From NCBI GenBank assembly GCA_013239625.1, contig MU055178.1, forward strand, positions 8,306,873 through 8,370,872: a DNA stretch of 64,000 bases, given 5' to 3'. The translations under genes were made by a program, and so were the position numbers. This DNA is from Lama guanicoe (taxonomy: Eukaryota). The notes below the pieces were generated by a model. The model saw only the letters and a list, made by a program, of their open reading frames with translations. It was not told the origin of the DNA and did not search any database. Shown piece after piece: positions 36,191 through 48,799 of this stretch; the stretch's first letter is position 1; each line of letters opens with the position of its first letter.

Positions 36191-36201
36191 TCAGTTAGGA
36201 G
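36191..36201 (-). CDS. MYBPHL: MYBPHL exon 8, coding part (exon continues to 36156)
   Basis: ttcttgcag|CT CCT AAC TGA; donor AAG|GTAAGG after 36156. Confidence 0.8.
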
Positions 36202-39200
36202 CTGCAAGAATTTAGACATTTTTCACTGTTAAAATCTCTGGGAAACCTTCTTTTGGAGCATTGGGAAGGGATATACTTCCAGGTTTTTCGGGAGTCCATG
36301 GTGCTAATTAGTCTATGCATAGAGAAGAATAGGACTTGTAATGGCCAATCATTCCTGATTCATACTACACATACTTAGAGAATGCCCACTGTGTGTCCGA
36401 AATTGGGCTCGACACTGGGGGACAAAGGCGAAAAAGATGGTCCCTGCCCTTGAAATTCTCACAGTTTATGGGAAAACAGATCAGTAAATAGATACCTATA
36501 AAATAATATGCTAAATGCAATGATGGAGATCTAAGCAAGGTGACAAGAATGGATAAATGAATGAATACTTTAAAAGAGGTAGAGAGGATGTGCAATAGTC
36601 CCTCTTAACAAATCAGAGACAGGAAGTCCTCTAGTTTGCTTTAAAGCCCAACAAAGAGCTATAGCCCTCCTGGACTGAGTCAGAAGATTGTATAGATTAA
36701 AGAAAAACGATCCAGGTGAGGTCCAGGAGACTTGGCCTATTTTCATCGTAGTACCAGCTCCTCAATTAACCAACACTGGAAATCTCCAGTAAACTGATTG
36801 ATTACCTCTCTGTGCTTCAGGTTTCTCCTTTGAAGAACAGAAAGCAATTCTTCCTATATTAAGAATTATGATGGTGAAAAATGAGATAGTGGATAAAGAC
36901 AGCTCCTCAAATATATCCTGATGATGACAGTGATGAGAAGGCCTGAAGGGGGAAGCGAGCCGAGCCCTCCTCCCTATAGGCTTGTGTCTCTGCTCTCCAC
37001 TTTTCCACCTATGGAGGGAGGAGGTGATGCACCCTAAAGTGTGAATTCTGCCCTTACCTTTCACATCTACCCGACAGTCCACGGACGCCTCCCCCAGGGG
37101 ATTAACCGCCTTGCACGTGCAGATGCCCCCGTCAAAGGGACCAGGCTTGCGGATTTCTAGGGAGCAGATTCCCAGGTGGGTGAGGGCTCTGTGCTTGGGG
37201 TTGCCTTGAATATCCATCTTGTTCTTCAGCCAGATGATCTTCGGCTGGAAGATAAGGTGAGGGGGCAGCAAGGGGTGGTAAGAACCAATTGTTCTCTCTG
37301 TGCTCAGTCTCTGGGACTCTTTGCCTTCAAGGCTTGGGGACACACTGGCCAGGGGAACAGTAGGAGTAGGGTGATTTAAGAACAGATGGTACAGGGATCT
37401 GGGAGAGGTAACAGCCTTCTGGAAAGCTCCCTATCCCTGACGTTTGCGAAGGGGTTTTCCTGCCGGTATCTTAGCAGCCTCCCAAGCTCCTTCTCTTGGT
37501 TGAAAAGAGACCTTGCCTTGTTCATCAGGTATTCCTGACTAGAAAAAGGGTGTTTCTTCTGTTCCATCCTGCTCAAGCAGACCCTTCATGGACCAGAAGC
37601 GCTGGGTGTCAGAACCTCCTCTTTTTCATATATACATTGTTGAATCACTGATAGTCTATCCCCACCCTTGGCTCAGGAGTCACTCCTGTCCCCTCTGGTT
37701 AGAAAGTAGATTATAGAGTGGGCTTATTAATACCCTTTCTGAGATGTTAGCTCCCTGTGGTCTGGCCCAAGACTAATACACAACAGGTACTTGGTGAAGG
37801 TATTCATGGTGTTTTATGCCATGTGTGGAGGACAGAGCCTAGATTGTAAACATAATAAAACAATAGATTGTAAGTCGGGTTGTGGCCAAAGGCTAAACTC
37901 CAGGCAGCTAGCATGTGCACAGTCACCCTGATCAGATGAGCATTGGGGGTGAGCAAGGAGAAACCAACAGGACTCCATCACCCCTGCCAGAGAAACAATT
38001 TTGAAGCTCATGCCCAATTGCCAGCAGATCAGAAAGTGACATCTCCATATACAAGGCACAAACACTTCAAGGAAAACTGGAAATATTCTCCACATCAGCC
38101 TGTCTTGGACTCCAGTGCCCTGAGTGTTCTGATGAAACTTGATGTGGAAGAGGCAGATGATGGGGACAGGAACAAATGTTTTGGTTAGAATCTCCTTGGA
38201 CACAGCGAAGGTTAGAGCAGGAGCAGAAAGCAGCACAGCACAGCCACCCACAGACCTCCCTGCTCACCTTGGGCGAGGCGCGGACGCAGCAGAAGAGCTG
38301 GGTGTCGTAGCCAATGACTGTAGTGCAGTCCGCCAGAGGCTGGGTGAACTTCTGGGCTTCAGAGAAATCTCGCTGAGCAAAACCCTTGGTCTTGTGAACG
38401 GTAGCTGAGGGGGCCAAATAGGGCCTTGCCGTAGTGCCTGAGCGCCCCATCCCTCTTCACCTCTGCACCCTTAACTCTTCCCGGCTCCAAGTCACAGTGT
38501 CTTACCTGCTTTCTGGATGTGGGCCAGGTCGGCAGCGATAGGGGCTGTCTCACTGAGCCCACACGGGTTCTCAGCAAAGACTCGAAAAGCATAGGAGTTG
38601 CCGACGATGAGGTTGGAGACTGTGCAGCTGGTGCGGTGACAGCGCTCCTGCACCGTGAACCACAGCTGTGGGGTCCCGAGAAGATGCCTTGAATGACACC
38701 CTAGTTTTGTGAATTCACTCCAGCTCAGCCCACCCAGTGCAGATCCCAGAACCCCATTCCAGAACGTGCTGTCCGTCTTCCCCTTCCTCCCAGCTGGGCC
38801 TCATCCCAGACTTAGTGTCAGCCTTCTGCACCGTGTATCCTAGGAGTGCCGCGTTGCCCGTGTCTCGGGGTGGTGTCCACTCCAGGGCAGCGCTGGAGCC
38901 CCAGACATCCACCAGCTTGATACTCTGAGGAGGGCCCGGCCTCTCTGAAAGGGCCAAGAATGCCAGCAGACTTGAGGACATCACTCCAGGAGGGTCCCTC
39001 CTCTTCTGCTCAGCCACCCCACCCTTCACCCACCACTGCATCCCACAGCCCCACTTTCCCAGCTCTATGTGCTGGCTCCTCCTCAGGCTGGAGAGGGAGC
39101 CCCTGAGAACCAACCCATCTCCCATTCCCCTGACTGTACCGATCACCGGGATGTCAATGGTGGCAGTGGCCTCCAGCCTGCCCAGCTGCACACTGAGCTG

Positions 39201-42200
39201 GTAGCGACCCGAGTCGGCACGCTGGGCCTCTCGGATGAAGAGGATGGAGTCATGGTCCCCATTCCGCACACTCACACGACTGGTGTCCAAGGCGCAGCCA
39301 TCATGTGTCCAGATGCCTCGAGGTTTGGGTCTACCCTGAGAAATGGAAAGAAGGCTGTGAATGGCCCCCAGAGGCCTCTTGCCCCTCTTGGTTGCGGGAG
39401 GGGTCAGATCCATCAGGTCCACATGGTGACTTGATACACGGCTGCAAATTCCTTGAGTGAGAGGTTGGTGGACTGTCCCAGGGGACTCCCATCTCTCAGC
39501 AACAGCCTCAGGACCATGGGAAAGGGGGATGGCTTTGAGTCTCCCACTGAGAGTCTGGGTCATGGACACCCAGGGAAGCTGGGACTAACAATAGCTGCCC
39601 AAACTCCCGAGAGCCCTCAAAACTGAGAGCTCCCAGACCTCTGCTGACCGAAGGGCGTGGGTTAGCCTCAAGTCATCACATGGGGCATGACCTGACCCAT
39701 GACCAGACCTGACCCAACCCAAACCCCCCTCGGGAGAGCTGATGGAAGGGCCATTTGGCCTCAAACTTCTGGTGACATGCCCCTTCCATTCAAAGCTAGG
39801 GTGACTGTCCTACTGCTAGCAGGACTCTTGGTTTCTATTTCCAAATCAAAACCCTGGCCTGGTCCCACCCGTGGACTCAGCATGGAGTGTGGCATCATCA
39901 CCTGGAATGGGATTAGTAGGTTCACAGTGTCTCCAACCTTCTGGATGTAGGTCTGCCTCAGGGCCTGGGGGAGCCAGATCTTGGGGTGCTCTGAGTGATG
40001 GAAAGAGAGAGCAGGGGATGGTGAGCCTCCTGTAGGGGGAAGAGTAGCACTCAGAGGAAGTGGGTGCTGCATCCAGCCATGCTCCCTGGGCAGGTGACCC
40101 AGGCAACAGCAAACTAAGCCCTTTCTCAGGGGATGGGAAGATCGCTCCCACTGTCTAGCTGGGATTTAGGGATGAGCAACTGGCTGAAGGCTCCTCTAGA
40201 GAGCGTTAAAGTGGTGGCAGAAAGAACACTGAAGTGCAAGCCTGACGCCTGCTTCTCCTACTTTGTAACTCTCATCCACTGACTTTTCACTGACTGAGAT
40301 TTCTTTTCTCTGTTTGTGCACAGGCTAGTCCAGTCTGTGTGGTTTGTCTTTCCACCCCTTTTCTACATTTGTCCTCAACGACACTCCTTTAATCAAGGCC
40401 ACTTTCAATGTTAATCCTGACCTCCAAGTGTCAGCCCTGCTCCCCAGTTTGGTGCCAGACCCCGAGGAGAAAGCTTTACATTCTGCAGGTAGAGGCAACA
40501 CCCTGGACCCACAAGAACAGAACTGGTGTCACTGCAGAGGGAGCTGGTGTCTGGGTCCCTTCCTCTGTGGAGCCGCCCTGTTCAGGGGCCTGCACAGTGT
40601 CTTCCAGTTTGTGGAGGATCACTTTGTACGATTAGAATCTGGGGAAGATTAGGTCCTCTTCTCACTTCCCCTTGATCTTCCAGGCGTGTTCCAGTGAGAG
40701 GAGAGATTAGATTATGTTTTATTGGCTCCCAGGATGAAGATAGGAGATGCTCAGGGAAGTGCTGAGTGTAACGTTTGGAAAATGACCAGATGTAATTTCC
40801 TCTTGGGATACCTCGGTCAGTCTTGGCTGAGGAGATGCAAACATCCCACCTGGGGTCCCTTGGAGGCCTGGCTGAGACCTACTCCACTTTCTGGCCCTCT
40901 GGGGGTCCTGTCTCCTCCTTTCTCAGGCAAAGACAGTCCCCTGCTGCTGCTGTCTTACGTGGAGTGTGACAGAACTTCGATCCCACCGACTCCCTGGCCC
41001 CTCTCCACAATTCATTCCCAGCAGTTGGAAGAACTCCACCCTAGTCCACAACCGTGACAAACAGCACAACGGCTTGATAGCAGATTCCAGACTTTTTGAT
41101 ATTTATTTCCCTGTAAGTACATTCCTGAACATTCACCCCAATATACGTATGCTTACTTACAAATTAAACTGTTTAAAATGTATATTACATAATGCAGAAT
41201 TTTAAAAGATGAAATTTAAAATAGAATAAATGAAGATTCTAAGAAGTTCTTCCTACACCTCAATTTGTAAACCATTATTTAGATCACACCTGTAGTTTGC
41301 CTCCATTACCATCTTCACATCAGCTGGCCTTTGTAAAATGAATATAAGCACAAATATTCAGCGCATGCTATCCATTGTATTTACCTAGTTTCCTTTTTCC
41401 CTTGTGACTTATGTTTTAACCTGGGTTGTGCTGTCTTAGACTGTGCCTCACCCCTGCCCCGACCAAGACAGGCACTGAGTGACCCGGGGCCCCGCTGTGC
41501 CCTGAGCGCCGTCCTGCCTGAGTGGCTCAGCAAAGACTCAGCACGGAGCCCAGGCGGCTGAACAACCCTGTCTGGCGTCCCTCTGTCCGACGTTGACGGT
41601 TTGGGAGGAGGCGGGGCATGAAGAACAGAAGAAGTGTTGTGTGATGTGTTCCTCTCCTGTGGCCATCTTGGCAAGTGACCAAGGTGTTGAGAACAGGCGG
41701 ATGTGACTTAAGGGTTTTCTGAAAAAAGAGGGTGGCAATTGAAAAGGAGGGTTGAAACCTCAGCTTGGGCTTGGTTCCCCCGCTGCTGGGTGGGGAAATG
41801 ACCCTTCACGCTTGCCGGAGAGAGGCCTGGCGAGAAGCTAGCCCTGCTGTCCCCTGCTCTGCCTCCAGAACATCTGAGTTATGAAGGACCTTGCTGAGCA
41901 CCCAGAACAAGAAGACTGAAAGGAAAGGGCTGGGAGAGAGAAACAGATTTGTTGCAGATCTCCTGGCCGGTTGTGAAGCTGTGCTGGCACCAGGATTCCT
42001 GCCTCCCCATCTTGAAAGTATGTCTAAAGGACCATTCTCTGAGCTTGACAGTGTATCTGTCCACTTACCTGCCCTCCAGTGTCCATCTGGGAACTGGGCA
42101 CTGGAGTCTGGGCTCTGGCAGTGATCTTACCCCTGGAGGGAAGAGGCAAAGAAGGGAAGGCAGGGGGACACACTCAAGGATTGAAAAGGTTGAGGTGAGG

Positions 42201-45200: not shown

Positions 45201-48200
45201 CTGCCTCAGGGCCTTTGCACTTACTGTTGTCAGTACATGGAAAACCTTCCCCCCAAATACCTGCACGCATTGCTCTCTCATCTCCTCTAAGTTGCTGCTC
45301 AAATCACCTTATTAAACGAGACCTTCACTGAATATCCTGTTTAAATCAACAAACATGCTTGCCACCCCTAACACTTTCTTTCTCTGCTTTACTTTTCAGC
45401 ATTAGCACTATCTGGTATTTTATATATTTTATTTGCTTATTTATTTATTATCTTTTTACACTAGAATGTAATCTCCAAGAGGGAAGTTGTTTGTGCCTAT
45501 TTTGTTCATTTTTGTATCAGTGCTTGGCACATAATAGACACAAAATAACTATTTGTAGAAGGAAGAAGGAAGATAGGAAGGGAAGGAGGGTGGGAGGAAG
45601 GTTATTTCCAGGCATGGGACTCAGCATTGCAAGCTTAGGAGACAGAATAGTCCAGACTGAAAGAGGACACATGGTCAGGCGGAGCAATTGTGCTGAATCA
45701 GCAGAGATGGGCTCTCCCTCTGGGTCTCAGGGTCTCGTCTTCTCCATGTCAGGGGGCAGCCTGTCCCCCAGCCTCTCACTATTGCAGAAGCTCTCCTCTG
45801 GCCCCTGCCCAGCATTGCCTCTGGGACACTGTGTCTCTGAGTAGTGCTGAGGGTGACAGAGGATGGTTTCCCAGTGCTGGCCACCTACTTCTGCTTATTT
45901 AGCCGTGGAGCGGGCTTTCTTGACTAACAGCTCAGATAGTGTTGGCCAGTTGCAGTTTGTTTTGACACTGCAAATTAATTTCTGCTTCTGATGCTTGCTC
46001 TATTTCACATCTGCTTACCTGCTCACTGCAAGGGCTCTCTAGGTCCCATAGAGCTCCCTCTAAGGAAGAGGAGGAGTTACAAGGAAGGAAAAGTTCTTGG
46101 TGCTCGCTTGGGGGCGCTGGCTTGGGGGCCTGTGCCATGGCACCCTGAAGACCTCTGAATGGGCTTCAGTGATTCTGTGAACTCCCTGAATTTTGCTGAG
46201 TATTTTCCTTGGGGCAAGAGTCCACAGATTTCATCAGATTTTCCTAGGGGTCTGAATCTATTAAAAGGTTAAGAACCCTGATTTAGTTCAACCCCTCAAT
46301 TTACAGATGAAAAAATGGAAGTCCAGAGGGGTGAATTGCCTTGCCTATAGTCACAGGATAGAGCTAGGGCTCGAATCCATGTCTTCTTTTTCCAACTGGA
46401 TAACAGGTGCGAATACACTATGCAGAGTGTCACAAGGGGTCCTCACTGCCAGCGACCTCTGGGATGCTGCTGGGTTGAGCCTCTAAATGCTGGTGCCCCT
46501 GAGCCCGCAGTGCAGAGCCACCATGCATGAGAACAGGGCTCTTCAGGCTGCCCTTGTGGGCCCCGCCAGGCGCTGTCAGGGGCCGACTGTCCACAGCACT
46601 CACCCTGTGACCAGAGGGAGGAGTGTGGGAGAGGCGAGTGCCCTCCCCCAGGGTTTCGTGGAGACGAGCAGTCAGGGGGTCATCCCGGTTCTCATTCTCT
46701 CTCTGCCTGTGACTTATGTTTTATTCCCTGGACCGTCAGGGAAAGAAACTGCTTTTCTGCCTCAAGATCATCCCAGCCTGATATGTTCCCAATAACTTCT
46801 GCTCCCTTTACTTACTGTTCAGTGGGGCAAACTCAGCCAGCTCTCTGTGCTTGACATTCAGACAGCTTCTGAAAACTTAACATCTTCCATTAGGATGATA
46901 AGAAGCAACAAGCACACCCTGCAGAACTCTATTTGCAGGTAGAACTCAGTCTTCACCCCTGACTGGGAAATATTTTATTATCTATTCACATCTTGGTTTG
47001 GCCTCTTCCAAGGCACTTTGGATTATCTCAACAATCCTTTCAAGTACCCTACCAGGTAGATATTGTTAGTCACCATTTTACAGACAGGAAATTGAAACTG
47101 GGCTTGGCCAAGGTCACGGAGCTGCTGGAGCAGCACTGGGAATTGAATCTAGATCTTGTCTTCTCCTTCTGTCTCTCCTGACCCTGGGATTCCATGGTGC
47201 CTTGTTTGTGGTCTTTGCAACTTCTGCATTGAAGAGGTCAAGGGACCAGAAGTCAAGGGGACTTTGTGCAGGGAACTGTTTTAAATGTTTCATGCAGCCC
47301 CAATTACCAGTTGGGAGAAGGGAAAAGCTGGGCTCCTGCCTTCCACCTCCGTTGGCTGGGCCAGGTGCAGTGGGAGACACCCCAGCTGAATGTCCCAGAG
47401 CTCTTAGCTATGGAGGCCCCAGCCAGGGGCAGTTTTTGGGGTGGGTGGCAAGGCTGCTGGCAGGGAAACCTGGGGCTGGAAGGGGCACCCACCACCTCCA
47501 AGCTTGAAAATGTCTCTTTACTCAGAGGCTCACAGGGACCACAGAGGAGAAGCCAAATGCTTCTCCCCAAGGGGCTCTGCTTCCATGGAGCTCAGACTTG
47601 GAGAGGCTGACATTTCCTGGGGTGGGGGTTTTGGGGTTGGTCCCGGACCCATGGCACTGCTGAGGGTGACACAGAGTGTCACATACTGTTCACCACTTAG
47701 CCTCTCAGTGGCTAGAAGCTTTTCATTTCCTTCTTCTCATCCCTCATTCCCTTTCTGACTGGCCTTAGTATATCAGGTCCTCCTAGTCCCTGTGACAAGA
47801 CATTTTTAAAAGGTAATAATATAAACCTATCACTATAAGTCACTGTAAAGTGCCACAACTCCATTCACTGACTTCTCAGGTAAAAAGCAAAAACCCAGCA
47901 AAGACACTTGAACAGCAAGCAAGAATCCACCGAAGAAGGGGGTGGGGGCTCCAAAGGATGCTCCTCTACCCCGAGTACCAATCCCATGAAGCTGTTTAGT
48001 TCTGCAGAACCACAGAGGTGCAGTCAGGCGGTAGAATATCCTCCCAACTCCCACAGGTCGACCTCCCCTCTCCCCACCCCCATGGGTCACCTTCTATGGG
48101 GGGCAGGAGCTGGGGAGTGGCGCTGCCGGCCCCCCGCTGAGGTGAGGCCTGGGGTCGGTCAGCATCGGCTGGGCTGGCTTCCTTCACCTTCAGGGTCGAT

Positions 48201-48235
48201 CCCAGGGCCACCTCCGGAGCTGTGGCTGCCTCCAT
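36191..48235 (-). CDS. MYBPHL: Myosin-binding protein H-like (Ig-Fn3-Ig), 354 codons; join of 48235-48091, 39990-39902, 39335-39140, 38944-38805, 38665-38506, 38404-38268, 37244-37058, 36201-36191. Intron-4 donor is AT instead of GT, so this may be a pseudogene or loss-of-function allele
   Basis: [10 protein letters not shown]...; [30 protein letters not shown]; [16 protein letters not shown]; [16 protein letters not shown]...CRVDVKAPN*; located between PSRC1 and SORT1. Confidence 0.92.
36350..36560 (-). mobile_element. L2 LINE 3' fragment
   Basis: catacttagagaatgcccactgtgtgtc...atggtccctgcccttgaaattctcacagttta. Confidence 0.6.
37058..37244 (-). CDS. MYBPHL: MYBPHL exon 7 (Ig)
   Basis: [13 protein letters not shown]...[25 protein letters not shown]. 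Confidence 0.93.
38268..38404 (-). CDS. MYBPHL: MYBPHL exon 6
   Basis: [23 protein letters not shown]...CCVRASPK. Confidence 0.92.
38506..38665 (-). CDS. MYBPHL: MYBPHL exon 5 (Fn3)
   Basis: [36 protein letters not shown]...HIQKA. Confidence 0.92.
38805..38944 (-). CDS. MYBPHL: MYBPHL exon 4 (Fn3), followed by non-canonical ATGAGG
   Basis: [15 protein letters not shown]...[12 protein letters not shown]. Confidence 0.88.
39140..39335 (-). CDS. MYBPHL: MYBPHL exon 3 (Ig)
   Basis: [13 protein letters not shown]...DSGRYQL...IDIPVI. Confidence 0.93.
39902..39990 (-). CDS. MYBPHL: MYBPHL exon 2
   Basis: [29 protein letters not shown]. Confidence 0.93.
43890..45560 (+). mobile_element. L2 LINE remnant interrupted by an MLT1-type LTR (about 44130-44502)
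   Basis: L2 3' motifs cctgcctcagggcctttgcact...ctagaatgtaatctccaagaggg...gtgcttggcacataatag; nested LTR has gaaataaacatttgttgtatttgagcc. Confidence 0.65.
46280..46390 (-). mobile_element. MIR SINE fragment
   Basis: atttacagatgaaaaaatggaagtccagagggg...gtcacag. Confidence 0.6.
47020..47160 (-). mobile_element. MIR SINE fragment
   Basis: ccattttacagacaggaaattgaaact...gccaaggtcac. Confidence 0.6.
48091..48235 (-). CDS. MYBPHL: MYBPHL exon 1, coding part
   Basis: [22 protein letters not shown]...LLPPIE; G|GTGACC. Confidence 0.92.
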
Positions 48236-48700: not shown

Positions 48701-48799
48701 CGCTCCCACCCTCACTGAGTTGTAAAGCCTTGTCATCTGGACCCTGTGGGGGCGGCCCCATCCTCTCCACTCCCTCAGTAGCAGTGGAGGGAGCTGGAC

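Follow-up and report, generated by a model that had tools for sequence, protein, structure and literature searches.

The gene MYBPHL lies on the minus strand of a 64,000-nucleotide (nt) stretch of Lama guanicoe DNA (contig MU055178.1; 'the window' below means this whole stretch), between about 48.8 kb and 36.2 kb, and the donor splice site of its fourth intron is broken in the assembled sequence. The first base of that intron, at position 38804, is A (T on the plus strand), so that the site reads AT instead of the ancestral GT. The gene is otherwise intact, and there is no good in-frame site nearby to take the place of the one that has been lost. The reading we favor, tentatively and with a little less than even confidence, is that this is a genuine allele of recent origin that causes loss of function of the full-length protein, in a lineage in which constraint on the protein had already become somewhat relaxed. 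That the base is real, what it does to splicing, how old it is, and how frequent in the population, we infer from the evidence set out here.

On the minus strand, the junction between exon 4 and intron 4 reads ...GCTGACACTAAGTCTGGG/ATGAGGCCCAGC... (a slash marks exon–intron junctions throughout). Exon 4 (38805–38944, 140 nt), which encodes the first half of the Fn3 domain, ends ...KADTKSG, the last three codons being AAG TCT GGG, and intron 4 (38666–38804, 139 nt; ATGAGG...CCCCACAG) begins immediately afterwards with ATGAGG, its first dinucleotide occupying 38803–38804. Both the sequence of this junction and the change from GT to AT had been pointed out in a sequence-only reading of the window, and direct inspection of the strand bears them out. 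The boundary itself is set by homology: KSG is joined to LWFTV at exactly this place in more than 50 orthologs. A canonical U2-type GT-AG intron requires GT at +1/+2, and intron 4 does not have it. Its other end, ...CTTCTCGGGACCCCACAG, has kept AG, and 65% of the 20 nt preceding the AG are pyrimidines. The remaining six introns of MYBPHL are all GT-AG, as the same reading had stated, and the coding exons add up to 1062 nt, or 354 open codons. Among these 1062 nt, in eight exons, we found no second inactivating lesion, whether a stop codon, a frameshift or another damaged splice site.

The G at +1 is, to judge from comparison with other species, ancestral and widely conserved. Open reading frames (ORFs) called on genomic contigs of non-camelid vertebrates sometimes run from exon 4 straight into the intron, and these read-through ORFs preserve the donor in translated form. 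All 16 of those of MYBPHL type read KSG-V, the valine being a GTN codon, where the window reads KSG-M (ATG); all seven of paralog type read KTM-V or KTE-V, again with a GTN codon at the same spot. Since every read-through ORF from these other vertebrates carries GTN there, the G is the older state. The residues at the donor position in other species are Val-Arg, most often encoded by GTN AGG-type codons, which is the signature of a U2-type site. Word searches of the protein collection for a camelid read-through ORF returned other species only. The change in the window is a G-to-A transition, and it is not at a CpG.

There is little doubt about which gene this is. The exon-bearing open stretches match the I-set and fn3 families of Pfam in an order that gives the architecture Ig–Fn3–Ig. 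A word search with the stop-free stretch 39584–38718 returned, at the top, MYBPHL of Vicugna pacos, Camelus bactrianus and C. dromedarius, followed by that of some 80 other mammals, and every exon could be located by local tblastn with the alpaca MYBPHL protein at identities of 90–100%. The domains, the closest relatives and the exon-by-exon identities all agree with the name that the sequence-only reading had given it.

U2-type introns that start with AU and end with AG are spliced very poorly. Under the reading we favor, a germline G-to-A change at +1 of the intron-4 donor, carried on the assembled haplotype, would therefore cause the full-length Ig–Fn3–Ig mRNA to be largely replaced by RNAs that retain the intron, skip exon 4 or are spliced at cryptic sites. 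Retention of intron 4 leads to an in-frame TGA at 38717–38715, and skipping of exon 4 breaks the frame because the exon is 140 nt long. To rank the candidate cryptic donors we used a rough matrix, suited to ranking only, on which the ancestral intron-4 site scores 8.0, the present one about −2, and the other MYBPHL donors 0.5 to 11. The best intronic candidate, TGG/GTGGGC at +71 (38728–38736), scores 4.4, and splicing from it to the native acceptor would break the frame; the GT at +86 scores 2.0 and is out of frame as well. Other GTs are in frame. The intronic one at +39 (CAC/GTTCTG) is very weak, at −4.3. The exonic site ACG/GTGCAG at −27 (38826–38834) scores about 1.8, against 8.0 for the ancestral donor, and would cost the protein nine residues; the exonic GT at −108 scores 4.1 and would cost it 36. 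Enumeration of all register-shifted and paired cryptic sites produced in-frame products from weak sites only. The list of outcomes drawn up from the sequence alone—retention to the TGA, frameshift upon skipping, out-of-frame GTs at +71 and +86, and loss of nine residues by use of −27—was essentially right, then. What it overlooked were the GTs at +39 and −108, and the possibility of skipping exons 4 and 5 together in frame.

This last route deserves attention. Exon 5 (38506–38665, 160 nt) encodes the second half of the Fn3 domain and has a strong donor, CAG/GTAAGA. Exons 4 and 5 together amount to 300 nt, and when both are skipped exon 3 is joined to exon 6 with the frame kept. Models of such exon 3–6 isoforms, without the whole of the Fn3 domain, are present at NCBI for Felis catus, Prionailurus viverrinus and Vulpes vulpes. 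The route exists in nature, and the donor lesion would leave it untouched. Exon 3 (39140–39335, 196 nt), the second part of the first Ig domain, ends in the donor TCG/GTACAG (39132–39142), which is canonical yet weak, with a rough score of 0.5. Exon 4 thus has a weak donor upstream of it and a broken one of its own, and this may favor the joint skipping of exons 4 and 5. An NCBI isoform of the buffalo joins exon 3 to a site within exon 5.

If these predictions are right, the replacement RNAs would meet an early stop, and the proteins made from them would be missing the last Ig domain, a part required for thick-filament binding. The allele would then act as a null, or as a strong hypomorph, with respect to the full-length protein; the exon 3–6 isoform, which is rare, in frame and devoid of Fn3, would go unaffected.

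Could the site be real and nevertheless do no harm? One way in which it might would be membership of the minor class of introns, and this was ruled out, as the sequence-only reading had done. Intron 4 starts ATGAGGCC, not with the U12-type 5' splice site ATATCCTT (or GTATCCTT), and has no ATATCC; inspection of the 139-nt intron by eye found no U12 branch-point motif, TCCTTAAC; the 3' end is AG, and the orthologous sites are U2-type. Another is conversion of the donor A to inosine. ADAR disfavors G as the 5' neighbor of its target, and the base 5' of the donor A is G. A 321-nt fold contained no stable duplex around that A, and its minimum free energy of −125.3 kcal/mol was no better than that of shuffled sequences (mean −127.0; z +0.33). 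With no stable duplex and an unfavorable neighbor, nothing supports rescue by A-to-I (adenosine-to-inosine) editing, and we rejected it.

A third way would be leaky splicing of the AT-AG intron by the major spliceosome. The present donor matches U1 only at −1, +2, +4 and +5, with a wobble at +3, and complementarity would be modest even with the ancestral G restored, since −3, −2 and +6 are mismatched. With so few matches, efficient use of the AT donor looks unlikely. Published work tells both for and against such use. In reporter assays and RNA-seq, non-canonical donors rank GC > TT > AT > GA > GG > CT, which places AT third, behind GC and TT, and their use depends strictly upon enhancers and strong U1 complementarity (PMC6280755). 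An AT-AG intron in ACTR10 derives from a GT intron in some primates and is still spliced, and editing rescues three AT-AG sites (PMC4176328). Low-level use of AT donors is possible, then (PMC6280755, PMC4176328), and this and the ACTR10 example count against the loss that we favor. Taken together—leaky splicing, editing, or an Fn3-less exon 3–6 isoform that suffices by itself—a real but tolerated site seems improbable to us. The precedents, the carnivore exon 3–6 models and a reading frame otherwise perfectly kept speak for it; the modest U1 complementarity, where published use needed strong complementarity and enhancers, and the unremarkable fold and unfavorable 5' G speak against it, and binding of an Fn3-less protein to the thick filament is only hypothetical.

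Is the base real? Three residues separate the window from the RefSeq protein of the alpaca: the window has the derived state at two (R107Q and A127G) and the alpaca at the third (G366V). The window is evidently a South American camelid haplotype other than the alpaca reference. Several observations weigh against a real loss. All NCBI isoforms of the alpaca, in two annotation releases, and of three camels keep the KSG/LWF junction, and none of these models carries a low-quality flag. The NCBI predictor seldom builds AT-AG introns, and so the normal alpaca models suggest, weakly, that the alpaca reference reads GT and that the lesion is absent from it. We also asked how many of 371 words sampled from positions 36700–40200 of the window occur in public sequencing runs. 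Fourteen DNA runs, from five organisms, contain 0.93–0.99 of these words, and each of the nine best (four organisms, three studies) reaches 0.99 but not 1.00. The shortfall in these nine is 2–5 of the 371 words, approximately the cost of a single base difference; it would fit a base that is private to the assembly, the positions of the missing words not being locatable.

An error of assembly or consensus, in an animal that carries G and whose gene is intact, would account for much of this, and we regard it as unlikely, though not lightly dismissed. It would explain why a lone single-base lesion stands in an otherwise perfect gene, why the alpaca and camel models have a normal junction, and why the nine best DNA runs, some of which are possibly from the source sample, all miss a few words. 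Substitution errors are rare in finished assemblies, however, and the chance that one would land on an essential splice base is small. R107Q and A127G suggest a truly distinct haplotype instead of noise, the accelerated change in the lineage weighs against an error too, and the missing words, for their part, cannot be placed.

RNA runs add little to this. Of five such runs, four, from two studies and with reproductive-system or metatranscriptomic labels, contain 0.34–0.38 of the words, more than exons alone would provide (0.222) and close to the figure for exons plus the short introns 3–5 (0.374), a result that shows no more than the presence of intronic RNA or DNA. From these fractions, MYBPHL RNA, or contaminating DNA, occurs outside the heart. 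A 22-base pattern of the donor site, with R at the variable base, had no matches in Joint Genome Institute (JGI) metagenome contigs, and a literature search found no paper that combines MYBPHL with a camelid term.

If the lesion is real, it may have arisen in a gene already under somewhat less constraint than before. We aligned 52 orthologs, placing the window's exons singly and letting the alpaca protein represent the lineage in the tree. Ten amino-acid changes are common to the window and the alpaca and absent in camels; the camel stem has two. Three of the ten (T276A, P303Q and Y349H) fall at columns that are invariant in 47–48 other mammals. Of two more shared changes, both at columns that are nearly invariant, L183P lies in the final beta strand of the first Ig domain and Y373C in the Y-x-C motif of the C-terminal one. 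A quick maximum-likelihood tree puts the alpaca 0.0415 substitutions per site from the camelid ancestor and the camels 0.0135–0.018 from it, so that the llama/alpaca branch is approximately three times as fast. Other measures are less generous, and again tell against the favored reading. A relative-rate count of the window lineage versus Camelus ferus gives 12 changes versus 4, for which the exact two-sided p is ~0.08 by hand arithmetic, a marginal excess; and in changes at invariant columns the alpaca ranks about seventh of 52, level with shrew, naked mole-rat and one bat. The llama/alpaca lineage is not an outlier among the 52 mammals. Faster protein change in this lineage is suggestive, then, not decisive.

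Because these changes are shared with the alpaca, any relaxation would predate the split between the alpaca and the window lineage. One might suppose that the G-to-A change itself is equally old, having occurred on the South American camelid stem and become fixed in alpaca, vicuna, llama and guanaco alike. The ten shared changes, several of them at invariant core positions, would fit early relaxation of this kind, as would the threefold-longer branch. Old-world and new-world camelids parted ~16 million years ago (PMC12127551). Millions of years of neutral decay would be expected to have left some second lesion in 1062 nt, where there is none; the junction is conserved in every alpaca isoform model, and the rate excess is marginal. 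We consider an old, fixed loss to be quite doubtful on this account. With no stop, no frameshift and no second splice lesion, MYBPHL has evidently been drifting freely for no great time, if at all.

The lesion looks young. As we would reconstruct it, the donor base changed recently, probably once this haplotype and that of the alpaca reference had separated, in a gene that shows no other defect, and it did so in a South American camelid lineage whose MYBPHL was already evolving faster than that of camels. The sequence-only reading had proposed gene loss, possibly caught in progress, as a fixed lineage-specific loss or a segregating null allele. That interpretation survives in part: the ancestral G, the predicted consequences and some acceleration in the lineage favor it, and the lack of a second lesion does not. 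It had left aside the exon 3–6 bypass, the spliced AT-AG precedents and the possibility of assembly error. Since there is exactly one lesion in MYBPHL, this would be, at most, the very first step of pseudogenization.

The remainder of the gene is ordinary. The coding part of exon 1 (48091–48235) runs from MEAATAPEV... to ...PPIE and ends in the donor AAG/GTGACC. Exon 2 (39902–39990, 89 nt) has a canonical acceptor; an alternative acceptor at 40029 would add 13 residues (39991–40029) and is in use in the NCBI X1 models of camelids, and the warthog NCBI model has a longer insert at this same place. A further coding exon upstream of these, at 48717–48761 (MGPPPQGPDDKALQL), is present in the window, and the camelid X1 models use it. 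Downstream of the Fn3 exons come exon 6 (38268–38404, 137 nt) and exon 7 (37058–37244, 187 nt), the latter encoding the last Ig domain and ending in the donor AAG/GTAAGG. The coding end of exon 8 (36191–36201) reads CT CCT AAC TGA, after the acceptor tcttgcag. Elsewhere among mammals, the MYBPHL proteins of humpback whale and Amazonian manatee are labeled LOW QUALITY PROTEIN by NCBI, and the fin whale sits on a very long branch; MYBPHL may be decaying in mammals that live wholly in water, or the models may just be poor.

MyBP-HL is a protein of the atria and the conduction system, and in humans and mice it has been associated with arrhythmia and cardiomyopathy. Its gene has been linked to atrial fibrillation and dilated cardiomyopathy. 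Mice without Mybphl are viable, nonetheless, with atrial cMyBP-C doubled (PMC10741380), and about 1 in 700 people carry the stop allele Arg255Stop (PMC10741380; bioRxiv 10.1101/2024.07.01.601577). Truncated MyBP-HL does not enter the sarcomere, whatever the position of the stop (bioRxiv 10.1101/2024.07.01.601577). By analogy with these cases, loss of MYBPHL appears to be tolerable, and given a stop allele so frequent and null mice that live, a true loss in a camelid would surprise us only moderately. Should the allele prove real and either common or fixed, llamas or related animals would be natural knockouts, with large hearts, for a gene of the atrial sarcomere, one caught at the first step of pseudogenization. 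Such a healthy, large heart could show whether cMyBP-C compensates fully, and whether the animal tolerates, or even benefits from, faster relaxation of the atria. We can go further and imagine that one or more South American camelid species are fixed for the AT allele—high-altitude natural knockouts of full-length MyBP-HL, with cMyBP-C filling their atrial thick filaments instead, as in the null mouse—though we think this rather unlikely. Were the base to prove an artifact of assembly, or an allele that is rare and private, it would amount to little beyond a warning to annotators.

Compared with what is known elsewhere, then, this would be an ordinary splice-donor lesion that may mark the start of a unitary pseudogene. 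The AT-AG intron of ACTR10 (PMC4176328) resembles intron 4 in being U2-like, in having arisen by a recent, lineage-specific change from GT to AT, and in keeping its AG acceptor. The use of AT in ACTR10 is documented by transcripts; at intron 4 of MYBPHL, where complementarity to U1 is only moderate, it would be conjectural. Classical +1 G>A donor mutations of U2-type introns are also comparable: the base change and its position are the same, the ancestral context here being GGG/GTGAGG, and so are the predicted outcomes—exon skipping, intron retention and use of cryptic sites. Those mutations come from patients, whereas the camelid case was met in a reference-type genome assembly from a healthy species. 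Another parallel is offered by human Arg255Stop and the mouse Mybphl null, which concern the same gene and in which the C-terminal Ig domain is lost, as we predict for the window. The lesion here is in a splice site within the Fn3 domain, however, and is not a stop codon, and an isoform without Fn3 could survive it.

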